A stretch of DNA of 64,000 nucleotides from NCBI GenBank assembly GCA_965637545.1, contig OZ281499.1:9858001-9922000 (forward strand), in the 5' to 3' direction. Made by a program: the position numbers and the translations under genes. This stretch comes from Phallusia mammillata (lineage: Eukaryota). Positions within the stretch are counted from its first letter, which is position 1. Each line of letters starts with the position of its first letter. Under the pieces are notes generated by a model. It ran no database searches. It saw only the letters and a program-made list of their open reading frames with translations, and was not told where the DNA came from. Of this stretch, positions 6,001-39,635 are shown in pieces.

Positions 6001-7284
6001 TAAATAAAGATTCATTTTTATCTGATCTGTTTTTAACGCTTTAGAGCCAATGGTTATGTGGAATGAACATGATACTATTTTATAAAGTGCGACTTGATCG
6101 TGTTTTCAAAACCCGTTTTGATTGATTTACCTTGTTTGTCAACACACGAATCCAGTGTTGGCCATTGCGCAGACGGAGGCCGCGGAAGCTTCTGTCGTTT
6201 GGGCATCTTGTCAAGAATGCGACCAACGGCTTTGTGCATCGCAAGTTGCTTTTGTTGCTCAACCAAATCAAGCAGTTGGATTTTTACATTGACCATTGCC
6301 GGTCGTTTTGATGCTGGCCCACTCCAACAACTTTCCACTATTTCTTGTAGTGTTATGATTGGAGAACGAGACACAGTCAGAGTTGGACGTTGTCCATTTA
6401 ATATTTCACTAAAGAGTGCCCCGTGCATCGCATTCTGGTATGGAAGTCTACGTTCCAACATAACATACAAAGTCATCCCATAGCTGTAAACGTCTTCCTC
6501 TTTTCTCATTGCAACGTGGGGATCCAAGAGTCTTTCAGGGGCTGCATACATGAATTTTACTTTGGTGCACTTGTTTTCCAACTCTGTGCTACCTAACCCT
6601 GTGCAATCGATGATCAATGCGCTGCCGAAAGTACCAATTTTACATCTTAAGTCGTCTGTCAAGAGAATGTTGTCTGGTTTCAAATCACAATGAGTCAGAC
6701 GTTTGTAGTCGGTAAAGTTATGCAGATGGGAAAGTCCATCGGCGATATCATAGGCCATACGAAGCAGCAAAATGTCCTTTATCTCAGTCGTGCGATCCAG
6801 CAGGAGACTTTTTAGGGTGCCGCGCGGCATGTGCTCCATTAAAATTCCGAACCCAGAATCCCATTTTGAAGCTCCATAAACACGAATAATTCTTTCGTGG
6901 CTGGCTTGTTGCAGGATGTCAATCTCTGTAAGAGCTCTAAAGCAAACACTGTCATGGTTATTATAAACAACAAACACAAAGATCAGGATGGATTTAGAAA
7001 GAGCACCCACTATTTCGTTTAAAATGACTGCGAAACACAAGCCTACACTAATGTACTTTCCACATTAATGAACGTAAATAAATCGTTTACATTATGTTTG
7101 ACAAAACTTACTCGTTTTCCTGTTGTTTCTGGTGTACATCTCCTTGGATGGAAACGCACTTGACTGCAATGTAATCGAGTGATTCATGATGACACAGTCT
7201 GCCGATACCAGATGACCCTGACCCCTGTTGACCCCTTCCACTCAAAGGAACACAACGAATGCTTGATGCTTCATAGTATTTTGC
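10..7284 (-). CDS. RIPK-like Ser/Thr pseudokinase with long acidic/Pro-rich tail (gene C). The first coding exon was not located and the gene runs off the left edge.
   Basis: Exon 7284-7112 encodes GSGSSG and IAVK. Exon 6936-6131 encodes HCDLKPDN, KIGTFGS (DFG>TFG), YAAPE, DVYSYG and CW..PAxRP. Phase-compatible downstream exons: 5156-5076, 4773-4687, 4563-4405, 4242-4159, 3561-3525. Further plausible exons lie near 3335-3170, 2664-2607, 2357-2324, 1617-1529 (LPPPIPLR), 149-101 and 43-10; that distal chain is less certain. The two kinase exons have the same boundaries and phases as gene B. Confidence 0.85.
433..715. mobile_element. MITE with perfect 36-bp terminal inverted repeats
   Basis: GGTAGAGCTACTAACACCATAACGCAAATGACAACC at 433-468 has its exact reverse complement at 680-715. 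The flanks CGTAAAATC / CAAAAAATC match 7/9, a possible decayed 9-bp TSD. Confidence 0.8.
816..1116. mobile_element. hAT (Charlie/Buster-type) MITE
   Basis: TIRs CAGGGGTGGGCAACC / GGTTGCCCACCCCTT; perfect 8-bp TSD CCCTAGGC at 808-815 and 1117-1124. Confidence 0.9.
3761..3798 (-). ncRNA. Minimal type I hammerhead ribozyme motif, U3-A8 core variant
   Basis: The minus strand reads CAT-UUGAGAA-U-GACA-CAAGUUGA-UGUC-GAAA-CGUC-AUG: 3-bp stem I (CAU/AUG), 4-bp stem II, palindromic ACGU stem III, GUC cleavage triplet. Confidence 0.65.
3954..3989 (+). ncRNA. Hammerhead motif, second arm of the foldback, with stem II damaged by a 2-nt deletion
   Basis: CAT-TTGAGAA-T-GACACAAGTTGATC-GAAA-CGTC-ATG; identical to the left-arm motif except for the 2-nt loss in stem II. 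Confidence 0.5.
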
Positions 7285-15385: not shown

Positions 15386-18300
15386 ATGGCTGAAGTAAGT
15401 TTGTTTGGCAAATAGTTGTAACGAAAATAGTTGGCTATGAAAACATGGATTTAATAACACACATGTCACTTTCATTGGATTAAACCTGTATACTTATGCA
15501 GTGATGTCTAAAGTGTTGTTCGTGCCGAGACGGTGACAATGTTCATTTTGGCCCGGATTAAGCCAATTACAAGCTATATTTTTTTCAGCCTAAATACTTC
15601 AGGGCATCGAGTATTAGATGTGTGCCATCCAGTGCAGGGGGTCAACTGGGGTCGGGATCATCAGGTATTGTTAGATTGTGTCATCACACATATCATAACT
15701 ACATTGCCGTCAAATGTATTTCGATATACGGAGATGAGCAGCAAAGAGCAAGACAGGAGAAAGAGTAAGTTTTATCATTATTTTATAATAGACATGTGTT
15801 TTGAACTAATACAAACAACTGCGATATGATGATAGCCTACCGGTTCAGTAATAAATATACATAAGGACGTAATACCGGAATTTTCATTACTAAAACACCG
15901 TAATACAGCTCTAGCTTTCAAAACAATATTTTTTTTAACATTTAAATAACATACATATTTTACTCAAGTTTATCAACGTTGTTGTTTTTTAGGTTTGAAA
16001 AAAAACGATTGATAATTCTGTGTTAAAAATGCATATGTTTAGAATCCTTAACGAGGTTCAAATGCTTCAACAAGCCAATCATGAAAGAATCGTGCGCTTA
16101 CATGGGGTATCGAAATGGCCTTCTGGGATGGGGATCCTCATGGAGTATATGCCGCGTAGCAGCTTGAAAGATTTGCTGCTAAACCCAGCAATTCCTATTG
16201 ATGACGTACTGTTGCTTCGTATGGCATACGACGTAGCTGATGGACTTTCGTATCTCCATAACTTTACCGACTACAAACGTCTAACCCACTGCGATCTGAA
16301 ACCTGATAACATTCTTATGACCGATGACCTTAGGTGCAAAATTAGTGACTTTGGCAGTGCGAAAATAATTGATCAAACTTGGGTAGAGGGGCAACCAGAA
16401 AGAGTGAATGAAATTGCAAAAACTACATTCTTTTACACCGCCCCTGAAAGATTGAATGACTCGAAGATCGCCTTTAGAAAGGAAGAGGATGCCTATAGCT
16501 TTGGTATGACCTTGTATGTTATGTTGGCGCGAGAAGTACCGTATAAATGGCTTGGTGGTCTTTCGCGGGCAATCATAAATGGCCAACGGCCAAATGTCCC
16601 TCAGTCAACTTCAACTGCACTTGACGAACTGAAGACCATAATGCAAACGTGCTGGAGCGGAAAACCATCGTTACGGCCATCATTGCAAGAAGTAAAAATG
16701 CATCTTTCGAGGCTGGGTGGCAATAGGAATGACCCTGAAGTTTTAAGGGCAGTTGTGAAAGTCACTGAGAATCTTCCATTGCAAGCTATACCACCTTCTC
16801 CTGGTTTAGAATGGCCAACAATCGATCAGTGTCGTATTAATGAAGCTATACGTTCTACTGGTAAGAGTCTTAGTGTGTTACAAACTTAGTTTATGTACTT
16901 GACAGCAAGGTACTCATGCCAAACGGTTGGTGCACACTAAAACTGTTTAAAATCAAGTACAGATCAGACTTTTGTAAAGGTATTGGTCTCAGCTTTTTTT
17001 AAATCAGTGCAAAGTACGTAATTTGTCATCGTGCTGCTAGTTGATGCTGTTGTTTTTAACGTAAAGATTGTTTTCGGGAGTAAAATCACAACCAAACTTG
17101 AAAGATGGCACAAATGAAAGCTTACAGTTTAGGTGCGAGATTTCGGTGCACCTTCAAATAGTTGCCAGGTACGACATGTGATGGTTAGATTACATCATTG
17201 CGTTTGGGCTGTGAAAACATTTAAACGGAGCGGACAGCGGTTGTGGTAATTAAAGACATGTGACTTTTTGACAAGAATTCCTAAAAAATTAAATTGTAGA
17301 AGACGGATACAGTTAGAATAGGCATTTTCTCACTAAACCCGATCTTTATGAGTATTTCAATCGTTTTATGGGTGTCTTTCAACCAAGACATGAAAGCCAC
17401 ACGTTGTTTACACAACAAAGCTAATTTGAATGCCTTTGTCAGCCGCTAAATGGTAAAAGTTTTTGCGCTACTTTGAAAGTTCAACAGAAGAATCTTGCGC
17501 AATGTCAATACCATGTCGTGTTGCAACAGCTGAACAATGTCAAATGCGTAACAATTCTTAGAACTCTCGTTTACGAGGATAAAGTGAAAGTAAATAAAAG
17601 TTTAAACTTCTTTGTCCCTAACCACGTTAAAAAGTCGTCACTTTTAGTGAATGTTTTTTAATCTAATTATTTCTAACGCAGAAACCAATCTATACATTGC
17701 ACACATTTTTGAAATTATAAAAGCTGACATGTTTAGATTTGTTTATTTTCATGATAATATACTTGGCATTGTTTAATACGTTACTTTTAAAATAAAAACC
17801 ATTACTTGTCCCCAAAGAGAGAGATTTTGGGATAATTAAGTGCTTTCTCTAAGCATTTTATCACGATTTTTTGACAGGTATTTTTTTGCGTGTGATTTAA
17901 CCTATGAAAGTCAAACATTTTTTACACACGCTTGGAGGGCATCTATAAGGCTAACTTGATTGCTTTTGTCAATTGCAAAAGTTTTTGTCCTGCTTCGGAA
18001 GTTCAACAGAAGCATCTTGCGCAATGTCAATACCATGTCGTGTTGCAACAGCGGAACAGTGTTAAGTGCGTCATAATTCCTAGAACTCTCGTTTACGAGG
18101 ACAAAGTGAAAGTAAATAAAAGTTGGAACTCCTTTGTCCCTTACGATTTAAAAAAACGTTATTTTACGTGGATGTTTTTTAAACCAATTTTTTTTGACGC
18201 ACAAAACCCTAACCAGCCTATACATGGCACACCTTTGTAAAATTAAGCTAAAACGATTAGATTCGTTTTTATTTATTTATAATATTATACTTGACATTGT

Positions 18301-29900: not shown

Positions 29901-30066
29901 AAGGCAAACATTAGTCACAACGAGAAGGCTTTATGAGAAAAAAGTGCACAGCGTGCTTCCACGTGTATAGGAACTGTCAGATAACGTCTTTCGTCGCAAT
30001 TTTTGGCTGGCATCTTAACAGGAAACATTTAGTTTACCAGTATTGTAGACTCTTATTTCCTTTACC

Positions 30067-33000
30067 ATGGGAGACATAGAAAACGCTCACAAATCATTTT
30101 CCAAGGACTTGCCAGTTCTTGTTGAAGGTCAGATTAAATGGAGAGGAATCAAGGTCAATGCACCTAATCACAAACTTTGCAGAATAGAAATCAGTAATCG
30201 CGAAGTTTTGTGCAATGAAGAATCTGTTACTGAGGAGGATTTGCCTACAGTGTAAGTACAACCTTTGGATGCCTAAATTTAGGTGTTGTAAGCAGAGTTG
30301 TACGTCGGGCCGGGCTTAACACACTGTGTCGGTATTTTTATTTTGAATAAACTATCTAAGTAACCAGTTTCGGGACCGAAACTAATGTCAAACAGTCCTA
30401 AAACGCCTTGTTCAAGACCAATCGTCTATTGTGTTTGTTGTCTTATCTTTCCTGATGCTTCAGTGTATAGACCGGTCAAATAAACTTTCGGGCTTAAACA
30501 GACTTTTCAAAAACGATTCGGGTTCGGGCTTTCGGGCTCGAATTTCAGGACGGTTTACAACTCTGGTTGTAACTACGACCATCATCATCATTATTGCAAG
30601 TCATCGAGCAGAGATACGAAACTTGCGTTATAATTGTTTTATGTTTGGTGATATTTTAAAATATTGACATATAATGCGGAACAATACAGTATATTTCAAT
30701 ATGATATCGCAAATAACAGATCAAACCGTTGGAAGCAACTGCGCAACGCAGGGCGAATACAGTCAAATCTGCGACATCCCAATGTACAACGGTTTTACGG
30801 GGCAATATGCACACGTAACACTTTCAGGTAAATGAATTCTAACAAAAACAAACTGTACTTTATGTGCAACAATATCTCAAAATTGTCAAATAATAAATTT
30901 TAACTTTAGCATTGTCTTGGAAAACGGATTTCGCGGTCATTGTGATGAGTTTATGAAACAGATGGTCAGTAATTCGGTAAACGGACTGACGGTGCAAAGA
31001 ATGAAATGCAAAATAGCTTTGGAGGTATTTTACTGGTTTTACAATATAAAGTAACAAGAATGCTTTAGGTTTTTTTTTTATCAGCAGTATTTAATGGGGG
31101 AAAAACGTGATATCAACAATAATGGTGCCATGAGCGTCTGCCGAAACGTTTGAACAATAAAGCATGTCGCTTTTCATGTCTCCAAACTTATAAACAGATT
31201 TAGTTCCAAAATAGCAGTATTAAAATGGCATAATACGACTCTTGAAACAGGAACATCAATAAGCGAAACAGGAACATAAAACGTTTTACATCTCCTAAGC
31301 TTAAAGCGGAACATAAAATTGGGTTTTTAACGTCATAGGATATGTCTGTGTAGCTGTGGTCGTTTTGTGCCTTCATTTGTCACGAGTGGTTGAATGCGAA
31401 TAGAAAAGGGGAACTACGGTTTCGTTGTAGTAGTCTCACAAATATTTCTGATTTTTCGCTTCGTACCTTTCAGGTTGTTGAGGGTGCGGAATATTTGCAT
31501 GGACTTGCACCATCTGTTTTTCACATGAACCTGAGACCAAAGAATGTAATCATCACCCAGAACTTTACTGCTAAGGTATTTTTTGAAAGTGCGCCTCCCT
31601 TATGGGAGTTTCATAAGCCACATTACAAGCCTTGTAATCGGGTCTGAAAAGTACAGTGATGTGCAATTTGCTTTACAAACTTATATGAATTTGAACTTAT
31701 GAATTAATTTCATATAAATGATTGACGTCTGTTACAATCATCATCAAATACAAATTTCAACGTAATTTCACCTGATGATGTCCTTTGGAAACGTGTAAAA
31801 GCCTACGTTTACTAAATCACAATCTTTTCACAGTTAACTTCTTTTGAGTATTCCATTCGTTCCCCAGAAGGTATGTTATGACTTGACTATCTAACGAACG
31901 CAGTTTTTTTGATTTGTTTAAACAATCTATTGATTTAAGGTTCGTCAAACTCGTGGAAACGAGATCTTCCAGAAGATTTTGAAGAATATTTGCCCCCGGA
32001 GAGTGCAGATAAGAATGCTATTCCTTCTCAAAAGTGGGACGTGTACAGGTTAAACCCTTATAGTTCTGATATATACCAGGATGATTGAAGTCGAGTTTAT
32101 TTTGCTTGTTGATAGAAAACATACCAACACAATTGCACTAAAGCAATCACCATGCGTAAATTGCTGCGCACTGTTAAAATGTTATGGAGCGCAAAACAGT
32201 GAAGGGTACATTTGGTGGATCAGGACTAAACGAGCTGCAGCTACACCGTTTTATTAAAATTGACACCGTTTAAAAAGTTAAAACAGTAGGTTATTACGCT
32301 TCTGTTTTCTTTTCTTTAGTCTGGTGGTCAAATATTAACCAAAAAAGCCTAAATATAACACACGTTTATTATTGTTCACAGCTATGGGAAGTTTTGGTTC
32401 CAGGTTTATGAAGGTAAAGGCATTGATTTAAAACATTTTAAAATATTTTGTTCAAAATTCAGTTATAAGCAACACGATGCTTTGTGCCTTAAAATGAATA
32501 ACCATTTATTGTAATTTGAAGCGCAGTAATAAAACTTTAATGAACATATTATTATATTAAGATGCCGAAGTCACGAAAAACGGTAAATGTGATGCCAAAA
32601 ATGAAAATGAGTTTCCACCAGTGCAAGAATTCATGGCAGCGGCTACGGAGGCTTTGGAACTAAAACCTCTATCAAGACCAAGTTTTAACGGTAAAAGATT
32701 TTTTTTGTGAACAAGAAACTTTTGACCTGGGCTTTTTAAGTTACTGTATTTAAATTGGTGTTCATTTAATCTGTTGCGAGTAACATTTTTCGGGGAAATT
32801 CCCACGTAAATTTTTAGGTGTTTTCCCAATCGGTTCTTCAGTGTCTAGAGTCTAGACCAGGGGTGGGCAAACTTTTCAGTGCAAGGGCCGCATTCAAAAG
32901 TTCTAAATCTTATCGGGCCGCATAGTATTTCACCAACGGCCGCCAATTGCTTGCTTGTTTTTGTTTTAAAATAACTGGTGTAAAGAATTAGGTTTATATT

Positions 33001-36000
33001 ATATATATACCATTTAAAGCCACCTAAAATGCTTAGATTAATAGTTTCTAACATGGTGCATAAGTTTAGCTAAACGAAGCTGATTGTTTATGACATCATA
33101 ATCTGTATTGTGACGATTACTGTGCCTGTTTTTTCGGATTCTTTGCACACAATAAGCGGATAAACAGGCACCGCATATAGTTAATAGGCTGGTAATCTTT
33201 TTTCCAGTCACACGAAATCTGTTTTTAGCAGTTTAAAATAGTTGGCAAAATAGTTTTAGATACGTCATGGCCTCCAGTGCATGTATTTTAATAAACATGG
33301 TCACAGCCGCACAAACCCGTCTCCGCGGCCGCATGTGGTCGTACACGCCTGATTTAGCCCAAAATATTAACATAGCATATTTTCAGCTATAAACATAAAT
33401 TTGTTGTCAGTTGATTGGACAAACATTGGTTGAAACGCTACAATTGTAATTGTTTCAAAATAAACAAGCACGTTGTTTTGTTAATAAATTCCTTGCGCCA
33501 ACATTAAACAATGCGAGCCGCATTTAGTATCCATCTTTAGGTGTTGTGCGGGTCTGTGTTAACGATTCTGAAGCTATTTTTTGTCTGTTTCCAAAGTACT
33601 GCAAAGACGTAAACTTGATCCAAAGTGACCAAAGTTTTCGCGTCAACAGTGCAAAGTGGGCTGTATTTAAACACGTGAATCGCTTTCACTTTTATCGAAC
33701 GAAGAAATTATGTCAAGTGACGATTTGTATAAGAACGTGGCAGAAACAACAGGCTAAAGCACGAAAAAAGTATCTGTGTTTAGTTCCAAAGTATGGTACG
33801 GTTACAGATACTGCACATGGTATAGGTATCGGCAAGTCGCACCCGCGGTATTTATTTTTATTTTTTAAAACTGTACGCCTGTGCTTATAATAACTTACTA
33901 TTCAGCGTTGCTCGGTAACTATCTTTTTAAAATTTACTAACATTTGGCGGGCCGCATGAACTCCTTTGCCGGGCCGCATGCGGCCCGCGGGCCGTAGTTT
34001 GCCCACCCCTGGTCTAGACAGTTGTTCAGGCTCGTTGGTTTTTGAGCGCGAATCGGTAAAACGTTTACATTCTAGAATCTAGACATTCCTAAATCACATG
34101 GTTCCTTATTTCCAGCTATGTCGCAATATTCTTTTCGAGCGCGAATCATACATATAAGGCCATTTTCGAACGGATATGAAATATCAGGTCATTCTACTTC
34201 AATATAGGTACTAGCAATAAGTCTCACTTAGCTCATAGCTGGGTCATAATGTTCCGATTTGTGAAACACAGCAGTTTTGACCGGAGACAGGCAGAGAGTA
34301 TTCGAGCTCTAGACGGTTCCAAATACGGATTTTCAATATTTTTACACGTATCATGGCTGTAATGCTCACCAATTTCCTCTACGGCCAGTTTTTCTACTCT
34401 CACAATTTTCAACAATCTTTGTTTTTCAGATCTGCAACAAAACTTGGCAGAGCATAGCTTGGATTGCAACCTCAGAGAAAAAGAAAAGGAAGAAATTGAT
34501 GAAAAATGCCCCAAGCAGGTTTCATTTAATCCTAAACTTTTAAAGACTGTGATTTTACTGAAGCGAACAAAAATAGGCTTACAATATTGTTTAAAAGAAG
34601 CTTACAGCTTAATATACAAATATAAATGTTGAACTATTATTTGACAACATTGTAATTTTTTGACATATAGAACGCTGAAGAACCACCAGTCGTTACTGGG
34701 TTAGTAGAATCCAACGGGGCTTCCGAAAACTTGAATAATGAGGCTTCTAGGAACAGGACAAGTGAAACCAATTTTCGCCACCGCCCGAAAAAACTGATTG
34801 AAATAGTTGGAAACGGGAGACAAAATGCAAATGTCCGTCCTGGTAACGCCGTGGCTGTAGTCCGACCAAATATGGCTATTCGTGTGTTTGGTAAGTTCTT
34901 TCATTCGAATAACTTTACTTTTAGATGTGGTAACTTAGTTCCTGTTTAAATGTCGTGGAAACTTTATAACCTATGAAGTACAAAATATAAATCAAAAACG
35001 TCTGAAGGATTTCCATGTTTTGGCGATATATAAGTTATACAAATTAATTTTGACTTTGGTAGGGCTAGTATGAAATCCAGCGAAAATAACGTGTTTTGTC
35101 GCTTAGTTTGTTTTACATGTCTTTAACAACTCTCTCCTTTCTAAATTAAATCGTAAAAAGCATCTCTCAGTCAATCCGTTTCTGTACACCAAAAACAATC
35201 AGAAAGTTTAAACTGTATTCCTTTTTTGCTTAGGAACACTATACACGGACTTGAAAAGTAATTTTGATTCTTATCTGTTTTCTACGCCACCTTTCTAAAC
35301 GCCAGTTCCCTATTATCGCCTGTGACGTCACCTCACACACCTGGCATTTACCTTTTTTCCCTAGTGCTTTATATACCGTGTTCAACAGCTTGATTGACAC
35401 TGATGATGACAACAGAGATTGTCGAAACGTCTGAACGATGTATTCTATATAGACCAGTACCTTGGCAGTAATGTTTTTGATCAAATTATTCCTTTTTACT
35501 TTTGCTCTTTTCTTTCCCTTCTATCATTATTCTTAGGTTTACTTTACTTTTACTGTGTTTTGCAGATGAAGGTTACAGAGTTTACTGGAGGCTGGACGCA
35601 GTTGCACAGCGTCATCCAGTGTTAGCCTTCCTTGCACTTTTGTCAGTAGTTATCGGGGTTGCTGTGGTTTACATTGGCGTTCCCAATAAACGTAAGTATA
35701 GCATCGTTCCTAATAACAAGAAAAGTAGACCGAATAGCATAGTTGTTATTACTTGTCTGTTCAAGTTATAGTTTTAATTTCGGTTTTGAGTGGACATTCT
35801 ACAAACACGGTTTAAAACAAATGTTCTTTTGTAGGCTACTTTGTTCAGTAAATATGTTTGTAATTTCGTTTACAAGACAAATATGTTAGAACTCGTTGAT
35901 CGCAAATTTTACTTTGAGACAAAATTGTAGGCTTATGTACTTTGACCACTTAAATCACGTGCAATAAGTTTGCACTCAAGTCACCTAATGAAGACGACTC

Positions 36001-39000
36001 ACAATCGTTAAGATAATAACGACTGGAGTGACCCCAGGTTAAAAAGGAAAAAGCTTATGTGATCCGAACTACGTTAACAACAATATGTAATATTAGTAAC
36101 ACTAAGTGATAATTTCTGCAACACTAATAATAAAAGTAATCTGTTACAGCACCTTCATGTCGACCTCGCCCAAGTCCTGCTAATGGAGGCAGCTCTTACT
36201 GTTTCATCGATGATCGAAACATGCAGATGTGTGAATACACTTGCCCCGCCGAATCTGTTGTCATACCAGTTTGCGCCTCCGCCACCTGCTTGGATTTTGA
36301 TCCTCCAATTACAGCCACTTGCGTCGCTAACGATACTTGGAATTTAGAGGTTCCCTACTGTCAAAAAGGTTGGTTTAAGCATCATCAGAAAACCAAAAAT
36401 GTGTAATGCAATCTGTGGGTCACTGCTTGTAGAAATGGTAAAGCTGCAGCGTGTATATAATATCATCTATCCACCGCCCGCTACTTTTTCACGTTTACCA
36501 TCTGTACTTTGTGAGGCTATTTCCGGCTTTAGTGTATTGCAATTGTGCTGCTACGATTAATTGCAACCGGCGAAATTAACTCAACTCAACTGAAGGCAAC
36601 CAAATCAGAACAAAGTAGTTTTAAAAATTACTCTACAAATCTAACAATGTGCCACATAGTTTTAACTCATTTCGGACAAATAAAAGGGTGGGACTGCTTT
36701 TCAACAGTTGCATGGCAATTTGTTTCTTCAAGCTACAGATACAATGTCAGTGGGCAAACTCGACACATGCGAAAAGTAAAAAAAAATAGCTTTAACAAAA
36801 CTTTTAAAACTTTTTAAACTTGTCGAAACTTTTTAAACTGTATATGGCTAACTTTTTCGACAACACTTAACTGGTTGTCTATTCTTCGACGAACGCATAA
36901 CTGCCGGAATAGTGTGACTGAATTATGGTGACCTCGATCTTTAACGCAAAACCTTCCCAACTATCCCGGTTGTATCTTAGTACCCGAGGCTACCTCCCTA
37001 ATTCGTAAAACGGTCCAAGACCCTGCACTAACGGCTTACCGCTAAAACCAATTGTTACAACGGTGACTTCACTACTGGCTAAATAATATATATTATGATG
37101 AATAAAACCTTTGAAAAGTACTTTTCAATCACATTACGTTACACCATACCACACAGCAGCACAACAGCACCAAAAACAAAGCGCACACTTCTCCAGGGCC
37201 AGGAGAAAACTGGTGCACAAACAGAGGAACCACTACCACATCACATGCCTCTAGCAAAGTAACCAATCACGACGCGCCACGGGAAATCACTAAAGCGGGG
37301 ATGCGTTCGAATTTTACCGGCGTTAACATACAAAAAACTATTAAGTGAAAAAGGGTGAAAATGTAACACAAGAAAACAAAAGCGGAAAAACAAGAAGTGA
37401 AAGGAAAAACGTGAAAATAAATATGTCCAAACAAATTATACGAGAAAACAAAACAAAAAAACATACATTTATAGGTAAGTAAGATTATTGTGGAAAATAA
37501 GTGCAATAACTAGATGTTAAGTAAGCGTGAGAACAAAGGTGAGACATTAACAGTGAATAACGAAACTAAGTGAACACCGGTTAACGTTACATTAGAAGAT
37601 ATAACTGATCATATTCCGGTTTCCCAGTAATGATGTTGGCTTTATGCTGCAGAAATTTCGTGCATGCCATTTCATGCTCCTAAGGAGATCAGTCGTTCAT
37701 CCTATTGTGTAAGAGGAGATGTTAAGTGGGAGCTATATCCAGATCAAACCTACACTGATTTGAAAAACGGCACCATGTGCTCTGTGGCCTGCTGGTCAGG
37801 TTATAACGCTGAGCCACAATCAGTTGTTTCTTGTCTAAGCACTGGCGAATGGAATTTGGAGCAACCAAAGTGCAAAAAGCCAGGTATAATTACAGTTTTA
37901 TGTTTCACTCACCTAGGAAACTGTTTTAGGCAGTGGTTCACAAACTTTTTCTGATTCCGTATACCACTTTGCGTCGTCAGGGCTAATGGCTTGGGATTCA
38001 ATAGCACTTGGAAACTTAATTGTATGTGTACATTCAGTAATACCTATATTTAATAAATGCCAAAATACGGTGCAAAAGTGAAAGTAAAGCGCTATGTTAG
38101 CCAACTTTATTGGTCTCTCTACCACAAGTTGAGAACTACTGGTTTGAGGCATTTATAATCCAACAAATCAAAAAATTTACTATATGATAAAACATCATAA
38201 CTTAGAATACAGATCATTCAAAGCTACATGCTGTGATGTGCAATGTTTTTCACACAGCACACAATTTTACCGATGTTAAAGTGTTTGATGTTTTCTGTTT
38301 ATTGATTGCTAATTCAAAATGAAGGCACATTGTTTCAACACAGTTTTAGAATGTGTTTTTGCTGTGACGAAAGTCTAGGCTGGTGCTGTAAAGTTTGTAC
38401 AGTGTAACAGTGTAAACCATAGTGTTTTCAATTATAATCTAGTAAGAATCTAGTAACATTTTACCGCATTTTTAACAGTGTGTCCGCATTTGAAACTTCC
38501 TAACTACGTTTCGGCCAAATGTAACGATGACAATGTGGTGGGTTCGGAGTGCAAATTTTCGTGTACACACGGAAGACAGATGACGGTAAGTAGTATTTCA
38601 CAGTACAAAGATCCCTTGTTGTCGCATTTAAACTTTATTAAAAGTTTATTAACATTTTTCAGGGTCCCAAAACTGCAGCTTGTCTAAACAGCAGGACCTG
38701 GTCTTCTGACACCCCGAGTTGTCAATGCCCACGCTGCAAAACAGGTCCTAATTGTGAATATACAACCAGTTGGAGGCAGATAGCAAGTAACCTTGGTTCT
38801 AACAACAAGGTAAGCTCTCAACGTCTATGTTTCAATACCTCATATCCTGTATTTGCAATTGCTAATAAGCCCTATAGGGCCAATTACAATGTAACGCCAA
38901 TTACATTTATTGCATTAAAAATCTTACAAATAGATATTGTAGTAACTAGACCCAAAACCGTAATAACCGAAATTTTGATGTTTTATATCCAATTACAAGG

Positions 39001-39635
39001 TCTTGCTGATGCAACTCGATATGGGTTAATTGTTTTACCGACAAAATACGTAGGTCAAATTCAAAATTATACTTGATGTTAAGAATAAAACTCGGCTAAG
39101 TTAACTTGATTTATATTAACATCCATCACCATAAATTAAACCTGATTCTTAATTCGGGAGATTTCACAAATATGCAGCATAATGATTGTTTTGTCGTTTT
39201 ATGTTTAAAACTCAGTGACAACAAATACAGGTGCCCATGTTAAAGTTTAAAATCACATTTAAAAACTATTTGTTATCTTAAAAACCTTTTATGTTTTAAG
39301 ACCTTTTCACGAAAAGAATTAGTCTGTTCTATCGCAAACTTTAATGTTCGAGAGCCTTCAAAAATTCATAAGATTCACCCCCCTTTATTTACCCCTTTTT
39401 ACCCCTGCAGATCAATTATGCCGGTCACGAAATTGTCTGCGAAAGTGACTTAGAATTTCTTCGTGGTCAATACAGATGCGAATGCTGGGGATTGGGAAGA
39501 CGAAAGAGGTGTGGGCTGTACGGCAGTGATGGTGGTTCTTGTGAACATTCATTATCATACTTTATTCGTGACTTAATGGCAGATGGCACTTTACCTGAGC
39601 CATGTGACAAAGATCATATGGCTACAGGCTGCTAA
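30067..39635 (+). CDS. Type II (inverted-topology) receptor pseudokinase (gene D): N-terminal pseudokinase, TM helix, 3 Sushi/CCP domains, EGF-like motif, Cys-rich tail; about 693 aa
   Basis: Exons 30067-30251, 30690-30827, 30910-31024, 31474-31575, 31834-31870, 31940-32048, 32382-32413, 34430-34518, 34671-34890, 35566-35691, 36150-36368, 37653-37883, 38479-38585, 38663-38809, 39411-39635 total 2082 nt, all phase-compatible with no internal stop. Kinase-fold motifs: LRHPNVQRFYGA, EYLHG...FHMNLRPKNVII, LTSFE, YLPPE, WDVYSYG. TM: VLAFLALLSVVIGVAVVYIGV. Sushi C..C..W..C patterns lie in the exons from 36150 to 38809. Confidence 0.8.
30293..30565. mobile_element. hAT MITE
   Basis: TIRs CAGAGTTGTA / TACAACTCTG; TSD GTTGTAAG / GTTGTAAC (7/8). 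Confidence 0.8.
32557..32829 (-). mobile_element. GIY-YIG endonuclease-like fragment (possible Penelope-like remnant) next to a hAT insertion
   Basis: KIYVGISPKNVTRNRLNEHQ resembles the Y(I/V)G...R...RL.EH core of GIY-YIG nucleases. The N-terminal GIY half was not seen. Confidence 0.4.
32858..34011. mobile_element. Non-autonomous hAT (Charlie/Buster-type) element in intron 7 of gene D
   Basis: TIRs CAGGGGTGGGCAAAC / GTTTGCCCACCCCTG; perfect TSD GTCTAGAC at 32850-32857 and 34012-34019. Confidence 0.92.
35398..35433 (+). ncRNA. Minimal type I hammerhead ribozyme motif (Penelope-type)
   Basis: CA-CTGATGA-T-GACAA-CAGAGA-TTGTC-GAAA-CGTC-TG: canonical core, 5-bp stem II, ACGU stem III, only 2 bp of immediate stem I. 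Confidence 0.6.
36800..37500 (-). repeat. Dispersed repeat of unknown class (copy 2)
   Basis: The core at 37009-37042 matches 29101-29134, with a similar compositional layout. Boundaries are approximate. Confidence 0.4.
37931..38141. mobile_element. hAT MITE
   Basis: CAGTGGTTCACAAACT / AGTTGAGAACTACTG; TSD GTTTTAGG / GTTTGAGG (7/8). Confidence 0.8.

Follow-up and report, generated by a model that had tools for sequence, protein, structure and literature searches.

A conserved ascidian gene that joins a RIPK-like kinase domain, a predicted transmembrane anchor and a sushi ectodomain in one open reading frame

Does one ascidian gene encode a receptor whose kinase domain lies at the N-terminus and whose extracellular part lies at the C-terminus? 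The question is raised by a locus on contig OZ281499.1 of the Phallusia mammillata assembly GCA_965637545.1. The DNA analysed, referred to here as the window, is a stretch of 64,000 nucleotides (positions 9,858,001 to 9,922,000 of the forward strand), and all coordinates without a prefix are positions within it. To our knowledge, the kinase follows the ectodomain in all animal receptor kinases described so far. The window consists of AT-rich animal DNA, and on its plus strand a single open reading frame (ORF) of 2211 nt, with 736 codons and zero internal stops, extends from an ATG at 30067 to a stop codon at 39633-39635. Along the 736-aa product, a kinase-like domain is followed by a tail, one transmembrane (TM) helix, three sushi-type modules and a Cys-rich C-terminal domain. 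A first-pass annotation of the locus, made from the sequence, had described the kinase-TM-sushi order as one ORF, and this description is confirmed both in Phallusia and by an ortholog in Clavelina lepadiformis with a single ORF of 757 aa. The gene would encode a receptor (pseudo)kinase whose predicted topology is inverted and whose domains are combined in a new way. The layout is conserved, no description of it was found, and a full-length message is so far only probable.

One reading frame and its ortholog in Clavelina lepadiformis

The gene was rebuilt from open segments and splice sites, and then with the Clavelina relative as an exon guide. Dynamic-programming chains based on splice scores alone were also tried; these built other open chains through obvious repeats and were dropped in favour of the homology-guided exons. 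A phase-consistent chain alone is weak evidence for a gene. The present chain is more than a chance product because it matches the Clavelina gene exon by exon. Its downstream exons are additionally backed by RNA junctions and by the database protein P0001, a Phallusia mammillata entry of 285 aa that is named after the Ciona gene LOC100176290.

The Phallusia model comprises 16 exons and 15 introns, all of the GT..AG type (30 canonical splice dinucleotides), with consistent phases. The phase-consistent ORF of the first-pass annotation is retained, and its count of 15 exons is raised by one owing to a 69-nt intron (31871-31939) within the activation segment. This Phallusia-specific intron holds a stop codon and therefore has to be removed by splicing. 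Exons are labelled 1-4, 5a, 5b and 6-15, so that exon 15 is the 16th. The ATG at 30067 is the first in-frame ATG downstream of the stop codon at 30046-48. Upstream of the first sushi module the frame holds only one other ATG, at 34872, six codons short of the end of exon 9; exon 8 (34430-34518) and the TM exon (35566-35691) are both without an in-frame ATG. Two exon boundaries each have two in-frame options, namely acceptor 30690 or 30720 and donor 34518 or 34548.

The Clavelina protein (P0010, 757 aa) carries a complete kinase domain in frame ahead of the sequence of P0003, a database protein of the same species annotated as "ZP3R-like". It was found in the cluster of P0003, which also contains two RefSeq entries named "RIPK1-like", 268 and 275 aa long. 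Clavelina loci from two assemblies were used, L001 and, from the RefSeq assembly, L003. On L001, P0010 maps to 16 exons. The Phallusia product is colinear with P0010 over the full length at 28.8% identity (kinase 26.5%, tail 17%, TM 33%, ectodomain 34%), and every Cys of the C-terminal domain is kept between the two species. The intron phases are 2,2,0,0,2,1,1,0,0,1,1,1,1,0,0 in Clavelina and 2,2,0,0,[1],2,1,1,0,1,1,1,1,0,0 in Phallusia, where the bracket marks the 69-nt intron. Fourteen of the 15 introns correspond with identical phase, nine of them at the exactly aligned residue; Phallusia has one intron more and lacks one intron of the tail. From this shared exon plan it follows that a kinase-tail-TM-sushi-head gene was present in the common ancestor of Phlebobranchia, the order of Phallusia, and Aplousobranchia. 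Exon shuffling, suggested in the first-pass annotation as the origin of the gene, is a fair description of an old fusion shared by two ascidian orders, not of an event specific to Phallusia.

In RefSeq, the Clavelina gene is split into a "RIPK1-like" protein (275 aa) and the "ZP3R-like" protein (454 aa). This split is due to one nonsense single-nucleotide polymorphism (SNP) and not to gene structure. At Arg codon 276, CGA in L001 (C at L001:14386) is replaced by TGA in the kinase of the RefSeq assembly (T at L003:9841); the change was predicted from the end of the RefSeq kinase model (..EENF) and then found in L003. The TGA is a segregating truncation allele in Clavelina. Exon 7 of the Clavelina gene ends in WAHSPEIRPGFE, and in exon 8 (EIKERLNFE-MNDQQ..) the final helix of the kinase runs on, in one frame, into the N-terminal residues of the RefSeq "ZP3R-like" protein. 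The splice sites are intact in both assemblies. Between L001 and L003 the coding sequence shows 13 synonymous and 13 non-synonymous differences (4/5 in the kinase, 7/7 in the ectodomain), which are too few to show selection. Within ~10 kb, the surroundings of the window gene and of the Clavelina loci show no synteny. In the mapped Clavelina model, the donor of exon 2 (L003:5416-5417) reads GC and not GT.

Kinase fold, predicted membrane anchor and predicted ectodomain

To characterize the kinase half, a local hidden Markov model (HMM) was built from 18 non-ascidian TKL kinases. It matches residues 69-287 of the spliced Phallusia product, through subdomain XI, with 65 bits (E 4e-19), compared with 4 bits for the best of 2000 shuffled controls. 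For the other profile, fold and structure comparisons, P0010, P0001 or single exons served as stand-ins for the 736-aa protein. Single kinase exons give weak or no Pfam matches, the best being Pkinase with E 0.0024 on the catalytic-loop exon. The kinase domain spans ~290 aa and is followed by a predicted cytosolic tail of ~110 aa; in both species only ~35 residues precede the N-lobe.

The exons of the kinase domain can be assigned to its subdomains one after another. Exon 1 (30067-30251) contains the start codon and a degenerate N-lobe; it has a GTAAGT donor, aligns with Clavelina exon 1 and shares its phase-2 intron, and no RNA was seen over it. Exon 2 (30690-30827) encodes alphaC and subdomain IV, including LRNAGRIQSNLRHPNVQRFYGAI; the intron behind it has the same position and phase in Clavelina, and the RNA-contig depth over this exon is 0. 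Subdomains V-VIa (IVLENGF..RMKCKIALEV) lie on exon 3 (30910-31024), which is found by tblastn with residues 105-148 of P0010 at 39% identity and with the same exon limits. The catalytic-loop exon 4 (31474-31575) encodes HMNLRPKN in place of HRDLKxxN; it yields the Pkinase match given above, is aligned by the kinase HMM and has an intron position common to Clavelina. Exon 5a (31834-31870) encodes LTSFEYSIR, with SFE for DFG, and is followed by the Phallusia-specific intron with a GTATGT donor, a branch-like CTAAC site and a TTTAAG acceptor. The activation segment continues on exon 5b (31940-32048) with LPPE at the APE position and KWDVY, and the next intron (phase 2) is again common to Clavelina. 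Subdomain IX, (S)YGKFWFQVYE, is placed on exon 6 (32382-32413) by the HMM alignment. Exon 7 (32562-32690) encodes subdomains X-XI and ends in ..LKPLSRPSFN; the intron behind it lies at the identical aligned position, in phase 1, in Clavelina. The first-pass annotation had regarded subdomain XI as absent, and this is corrected here: it is found on exon 7 and at the start of exon 8 (DLQQNL). Exon 8, the counterpart of Clavelina exon 8 and likewise of RNA-contig depth 0, completes the last kinase helix (DLQQNLAEH) and leads into an acidic linker.

The catalytic residues of the Phallusia domain are lost, as had been noted from the sequence. In the HMM alignment, HMN(LR) replaces HRD(LK), SFE replaces DFG and a Gly occupies the position of the alphaC Glu. 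In the pairwise alignment with Clavelina, a VLC of Phallusia lies opposite the Clavelina VLK, and no Gly-rich loop is visible. Retained are motifs of structural importance, namely LRHPNV..YG, YLH, LPPE, DVYSYG, RPSF and H-x-N. The Phallusia product would therefore be expected to act as a pseudokinase.

The Clavelina domain is the more typical kinase. Pfam matches it at residues 35-300 of P0010 with E 3.5e-36, and Pfam Sushi matches P0010 as well. It keeps GxGxxG, VLK, the alphaC Glu, HLD (non-RD), DFG and APE, so that the Clavelina kinase could signal directly. Among its solved relatives, RIPK1 accounts for each of the 13 best distinct PDB sequences (E 1e-26), and RIPK2/4/3 come next. None of the RIPK partner domains (death domain, CARD, RHIM) was detected by Pfam in P0010. 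A RIPK-like identity of the Phallusia kinase is supported through its Clavelina ortholog, the Phallusia domain itself being too diverged for direct placement. The first-pass annotation had spoken of a RIPK/MLKL-like domain; the RIPK half of this label holds, and the MLKL half is dropped for lack of the N-terminal helical bundle. No specific similarity to MLKL was detected.

The tail is encoded mainly by exon 9 (34671-34890), which has a strong GTAAGT donor, joins the TM exon in phase 1 and has an RNA-contig depth of 0. It contains short repeats in which alternating hydrophobic residues are followed by R/G-P/N (IEIVGNG, VAVVRPN). Similar repeats are found in P0010 (IIIIDRP and LILERNP, residues 340-375) and in the kinase-less relative P0002 described below (NVIVNISG, residues 1-40). 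Pfam detects neither a RHIM nor any other domain in the tails; short cryptic RHIM-like motifs are possible. The repeats recall amyloid-type interaction motifs, and a cryptic RHIM-like role is a possible lead.

Exon 10 (35566-35691) encodes the only hydrophobic segment of the protein, PVLAFLALLSVVIGVAVVYIGV (residues ~403-424), located after the kinase. Its acceptor doubles as a spliced-leader trans-splice site, and the exon is covered by RNA contigs of the runs X5, X2 and X3. An N-terminal signal peptide or hydrophobic N-terminus is absent in Phallusia and Clavelina, in agreement with the first reading of a single TM helix and no signal peptide. The C-terminal side of the helix contains 30 Cys and the N-glycosylation sequons NDT and NGT, both of which had been pointed out for the ectodomain. 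In Clavelina, five Lys/Arg precede the helix and four follow it, which weakly fits an orientation with the kinase inside. The orientation rests mainly on the disulfide-rich, sequon-bearing C-terminal part because the Phallusia helix is flanked by basic residues on both sides. From these features we infer a type II single-pass topology, the same as that proposed initially.

Three modules follow the helix. Exon 11 (36150-36368) encodes module 1, which is atypical, with eight Cys and the NDT sequon; it is joined to exon 10 by the junction 35691/36150 in three RNA runs and is 32-37% identical to the Clavelina module. Module 2, with the NGT sequon, lies on exon 12 (37653-37883), into which a loose RNA-contig end behind 36368 continues. 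Exon 12 alone matches Pfam PF00084 with E 1e-5 (26 bits, gathering cut-off 20.7). Module 3 is divided between exon 13 (38479-38585), which is included in P0001, and exon 14 (38663-38809), where its second half is followed by the CPxCxTGxxC knot that opens the C-terminal domain. Pfam Sushi is above the cut-off for modules 2 and 3, with E 2.9e-12 over two stretches of P0001. Module 1 has no Pfam match and a poor AlphaFold2 (AF2) model with a predicted local distance difference test (pLDDT) value of 51; its Cys/Trp pattern and its alignment with Clavelina suggest a sushi-like module. Of the three Sushi domains in the first-pass annotation, modules 2 and 3 are thus established by Pfam and module 1 only on the latter grounds.

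The body of the C-terminal domain, or head, and the stop codon lie on exon 15 (39411-39635), to which P0001 is 100% identical. The first-pass annotation had read this part as an EGF-like motif and a six-Cys tail. Instead, alignment A1 of its relatives reveals one conserved domain of ~100 aa with the invariant positions C53, C55, C64, C74, H76, C95, D96 and C104. The AF2 model of the domain (pLDDT 89, predicted template modelling score 0.80) consists of a helix, four strands and a long helix. In Foldseek, the top PDB match is the shrimp anti-lipopolysaccharide factor (ALF) 2job, and the top six Swiss-Prot matches are all ALF or scygonadin (TM-score 0.56-0.64, probability 1.0). The selectin/complement-receptor-like ectodomain originally suggested does not hold at the tip, which is modelled as an ALF-like alpha/beta domain rather than a selectin or EGF type. 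A cationic strand, RRKR, is part of the head, which may bind anionic microbial lipids.

The C-terminal exon was also compared with 1.84 billion representative proteins. Besides P0001, six relatives (P0002-P0007) were found with E 1.3e-6 to 3.1e-4; the four longer members P0002, P0003, P0004 and P0006 gave E 1e-6 to 7e-5. Two repeat-rich proteins in the same search were taken as chance matches. P0002, from the Logan RNA contig L002, has its own AUG and a 5' untranslated region (UTR) and encodes a tail, a TM segment, three sushi modules and the C-terminal domain without a kinase. P0003 has a 120-aa tail, a TM segment, three sushi modules and the C-terminal domain, and in P0004 (Styela clava XP_039265261) the same C-terminal domain is preceded by a signal peptide, a coiled coil and a single sushi module. 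Membrane anchors are seen in P0002 and P0003. These sequences place the gene in an ascidian family with the layout tail-TM-sushi-C-terminal domain. Most members are kinase-less, and the family comprises secreted, anchored and kinase-fused forms. Three ENA/JGI metagenome contigs with a GC content of 36-37% (L004:6086-10756, L005:7525-10273 and L006:9090-10195) also carry exons for a single sushi module and for this C-terminal domain; they look like tunicate DNA in environmental assemblies.

RNA evidence and competing explanations

Logan contigs from four RNA runs of two studies were aligned with positions 30600-36599. The junction 35691/36150 (GT..AG) is present in three runs. RNA contigs of 1035-1129 nt cover exons 10-15, which agrees with the 1055 nt of these exons and a short 3'UTR. 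They start at 35564-35568; the contigs of X2 and X3 end at 35567/8 without a leader. In X5, 17 unmatched letters, GGGATTCTATTTGAATA, precede position 35564. Together with the AG at 35564-65, they form the 16-nt ascidian spliced leader (SL) preceded by GGG. The leader sequence is that of Ciona (PMC1488885 Table 1). The abundant mRNA of the samples is thus trans-spliced at the TM exon. In Ciona, trans-splicing joins the SL to whichever functional acceptor comes first in a pre-mRNA (PMC11155486); this implies a transcription start for the short RNA inside the intron 34891-35565, which holds a repeat.

The coding capacity of this RNA is limited. The SL mRNA would have its first AUG, 16 nt from the cap, in the ATG that coincides with the acceptor at 35566. 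This ATG opens an out-of-frame ORF of 19 codons (MKVTEF.., 35566-35625) that overlaps the TM frame and may be an upstream ORF, be passed over by leaky scanning or have no role. There is no AUG in the TM-sushi frame of the TM exon, and the first in-frame ATG lies inside sushi module 1 and leads to P0001. Read from this internal Met, P0001 has neither a signal peptide nor a TM anchor. Since the receptor frame of the short RNA is without an AUG, we do not regard this RNA as the message for the protein; we read the only RNA seen as a 5'-truncated, SL trans-spliced transcript of exons 10-15 from an internal start. The first-pass annotation had named transcripts from two separate genes as the finding that would speak against a fusion. 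In part this is what is seen, with an mRNA that starts at 35566 with the SL and kinase exons that are uncovered; that mRNA, however, has no start codon for the TM-sushi frame.

We interpret the gene as probably encoding a type II single-pass membrane receptor, in which a RIPK-type kinase, a sushi stalk and an ALF-like head are combined in one chain. More speculatively, it may be a microbial sensor-kinase of ascidians that would be active in Clavelina and a pseudokinase in Phallusia, with kinase-less and secreted paralogs as possible decoys. The TM helix would serve as a signal anchor, with kinase and tail on the cytosolic side and the sushi modules and the head, with their 30 Cys, outside. The three sushi/CCP-type modules would form an extracellular stalk with the disulfide-rich alpha/beta head at its tip. 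Binding of a ligand to the head may cluster the receptor and bring the cytosolic domains together. In Phallusia, the dead kinase domain may then scaffold or allosterically activate partner kinases, for which RIPK-like kinases encoded a few kb upstream in the same cluster are plausible candidates. In Clavelina, the kinase with all its catalytic residues could phosphorylate. The fused protein is probably made, in tissues or conditions outside the samples examined, and the full-length mRNA that this presupposes is likewise inferred.

Several observations weigh against this interpretation. In none of the four runs is any kinase or tail exon covered (contig depth 0), compared with a depth of 5-12 over exons 10-11, and no read or contig links the two halves. 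The X5 leader, GGG plus ATTCTATTTGAATA(AG), is joined at the AG acceptor of the TM exon itself. P0001, too, derives from a transcript model without the upstream exons, since it starts at an internal Met within module 1. With a nonsense codon on one haplotype, the Clavelina kinase half is dispensable at least in heterozygotes. Searches with P0001 and with residues 420-757 and 1-330 of P0010, limited by shared words and length, yielded no further fused proteins and no Ciona ortholog, a result that does not argue for their absence. A third species with the fusion was not found: the three further family loci, L004, L005 and L006, have no detectable kinase exons within 10 kb upstream. As for the head, re-ranking with VIA-align gives ALF a Z of 6.7 and generic alpha-beta-beta-beta-alpha (dsRBD-like) domains a Z of 7.0, so that ALF does not stand above them. 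No sequence-profile match to the ALF family was obtained for any of the seven members at E up to 10, and the modelled ALF likeness is one of fold level only.

A first alternative, which we consider unlikely, is that the locus gives two separate products, a pseudokinase with its tail and a TM-sushi-ALF-like protein. The latter would be expressed through the SL at 35566, in an operon-like arrangement or from an internal promoter, with a non-AUG or internal-Met start, and the fused ORF would rarely or never be translated as a whole. The SL contig start, the exon 10-11 junction in three runs and the empty upstream exons all fit this explanation, as does the Ciona rule on the first functional acceptor, which implies a start inside the intron 34891-35565 (PMC11155486). 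Within the family, P0002 is a kinase-less member with an AUG of its own, and P0004 is secreted. In Phallusia and Clavelina alike, the locus is divided in public gene models (P0001 and the RefSeq pair). The Clavelina split, however, goes back to the nonsense SNP and not to gene structure, and the Clavelina kinase domain needs exon 8, which continues directly into the tail. The ORF and the intron phases are conserved across the junction between two ascidian orders, which also speaks against separate products. Moreover, the SL mRNA has no AUG for the TM-sushi frame, the AUG at 35566 giving 19 off-frame codons and the in-frame AUG an unanchored sushi protein. A variant with an operon, in which an upstream cistron ends by read-through at 34947 and is followed by the SL cistron, is ranked lower because the downstream cistron has no AUG.

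Even less probable is that the Phallusia gene is a decaying relic, with a dead and silent kinase half and a 3' half that gives sterile RNA from a repeat-derived start and no functional protein. All catalytic residues are lost, exons 1-9 are without RNA and the truncated mRNA has no usable AUG; repeats are inserted in introns 7 and 9, and in Clavelina the nonsense allele segregates. Against decay stand 736 codons without stop or frameshift and 30 canonical splice dinucleotides, although the kinase identity of 26.5% indicates a long time since catalysis was lost. That the ORF and the splice sites are intact despite the loss of every catalytic residue is the pattern of a selected pseudokinase and not of a decaying copy. 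The same holds for the motifs: structural ones (H-x-N, DVYSYG, RPSF) are kept and only catalytic ones are gone, as is usual for selected pseudokinases. The ectodomain, furthermore, is 34% identical to that of Clavelina, with all Cys of the C-terminal domain kept.

That the upstream half is a chance chain of open segments and only the TM-sushi gene is real is effectively refuted: alternative open chains can be formed in this AT-rich region, even via repeats, and single exons match Pfam weakly or not at all, but the spliced product matches an independent kinase HMM with E 4e-19 and corresponds to the Clavelina gene exon for exon and in the same phases.

Comparison with known systems and neighbouring elements

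RIPK-family kinases are soluble adaptors that are recruited to receptors via death domains, CARDs or RHIMs. The present gene resembles the RIPK1/RIPK3-type (TKL) kinases in that the Clavelina kinase is nearest to RIPK1 and is named "RIPK1-like" by NCBI; the context suggests innate immunity. In contrast to them, it lacks a death domain, a CARD and any RHIM that Pfam can detect, its kinase is followed by a TM helix and a predicted extracellular domain, and the Phallusia copy is catalytically dead. With pseudokinases such as MLKL, HER3 and the plant BIR2 type it shares a kept fold, lost catalysis and a degenerate DFG (SFE here), which makes a scaffolding or allosteric action likely. MLKL has GFE at the DFG position. 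Unlike MLKL, the Phallusia product is without the N-terminal four-helix bundle and brace and would be an integral membrane protein with an ectodomain.

A similar layout is that of the bacterial PknB/PASTA kinases, with a cytosolic N-terminal kinase, a linker, one TM helix and C-terminal extracellular repeats; the likeness exists at the ORF level in two species, the topology being predicted. The ectodomain is composed of sushi modules and an ALF-like domain, not of PASTA repeats, and the kinase belongs to the eukaryotic TKL/RIPK lineage, so that this is an analogy and not homology. Animal receptor Tyr/Ser/Thr kinases and plant receptor-like kinases (RLKs) are similar in being single-pass proteins that couple extracellular recognition to a cytosolic kinase fold. 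Type I receptor kinases (receptor tyrosine kinases, the TGF-beta receptor, plant RLKs) differ in having a signal peptide, the ectodomain first and the kinase last; the Phallusia gene is inverted and has no signal peptide. Drosophila PGRP-LC is a type II immune sensor with a cytosolic N-terminal signalling tail, a TM helix and a C-terminal extracellular microbe-binding domain. It provides a pattern-recognition receptor with type II topology, and it differs in having a PGRP ectodomain and no kinase.

The kinase-less ascidian proteins (P0002 and the secreted P0004) share with the present gene a homologous C-terminal domain, the CPxCxTGxxC knot, a sushi stalk and a type II anchor. Their N-terminus is either a short tail that begins at an AUG of their own or a signal peptide, whereas in the window gene and in its Clavelina ortholog the tail is preceded by a full kinase domain. 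Arthropod ALF and scygonadin are similar in the predicted fold of the last ~90 residues, in the cationic strand RRKR and in being extracellular and disulfide-bonded. They differ in that no sequence-profile match exists, in having one disulfide versus five and in being free peptides versus a receptor-tethered domain; lipid A binding is only a candidate function here. No paper on a kinase-TM-sushi protein or on an ALF-like domain in tunicates was found in limited literature searches, and the ESM Atlas showed no large cluster combining Pkinase and Sushi. Within this scope, the initial view that no described family has this layout stands.

If the proposed sensor-kinase is real, innate immune sensing would have a new design, a conserved chordate gene in which a RIPK-type kinase is built directly into a type II receptor whose head is a candidate for lipopolysaccharide binding. 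The gene would also represent a sensor-kinase of PknB topology in the closest invertebrate relatives of vertebrates, and the active Clavelina and dead Phallusia forms would be a natural pair for studying how pseudokinases take over signalling. A lesson for annotation is that one nonsense SNP splits the Clavelina gene in RefSeq, and that P0001 is an N-terminally truncated reading of trans-spliced RNA.

Two further kinase domains are encoded upstream in the window. The one-exon domain at 16002-16751 on the plus strand has HCDLKPDN and DFG and is apparently active; the one at 6240-6962 on the minus strand, also of one exon, has TFG at the DFG position. Both are 24-26% identical to the Clavelina kinase and form a RIPK-like kinase cluster beside the receptor pseudokinase. 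A tblastn search of all open segments of 30000-35600 against the window, at E 1e-3 and E 5, revealed no paralogy to these neighbours, and the pseudokinase is therefore not a recent copy of them.

Covered repeats inside introns of the gene (31140-31174, 32846-34016 and 35230-35560) are dispersed elements with very high, mismatched RNA-contig depth and loose ends. The transposon-like block at 32846-34016 lies in intron 7, outside the gene product, and has loose ends at its borders. The stretch at 35230-35560, a putative transcription start site within the intron 34891-35565, has a depth of 26-95, with loose ends at 35230-35232 and 35399.

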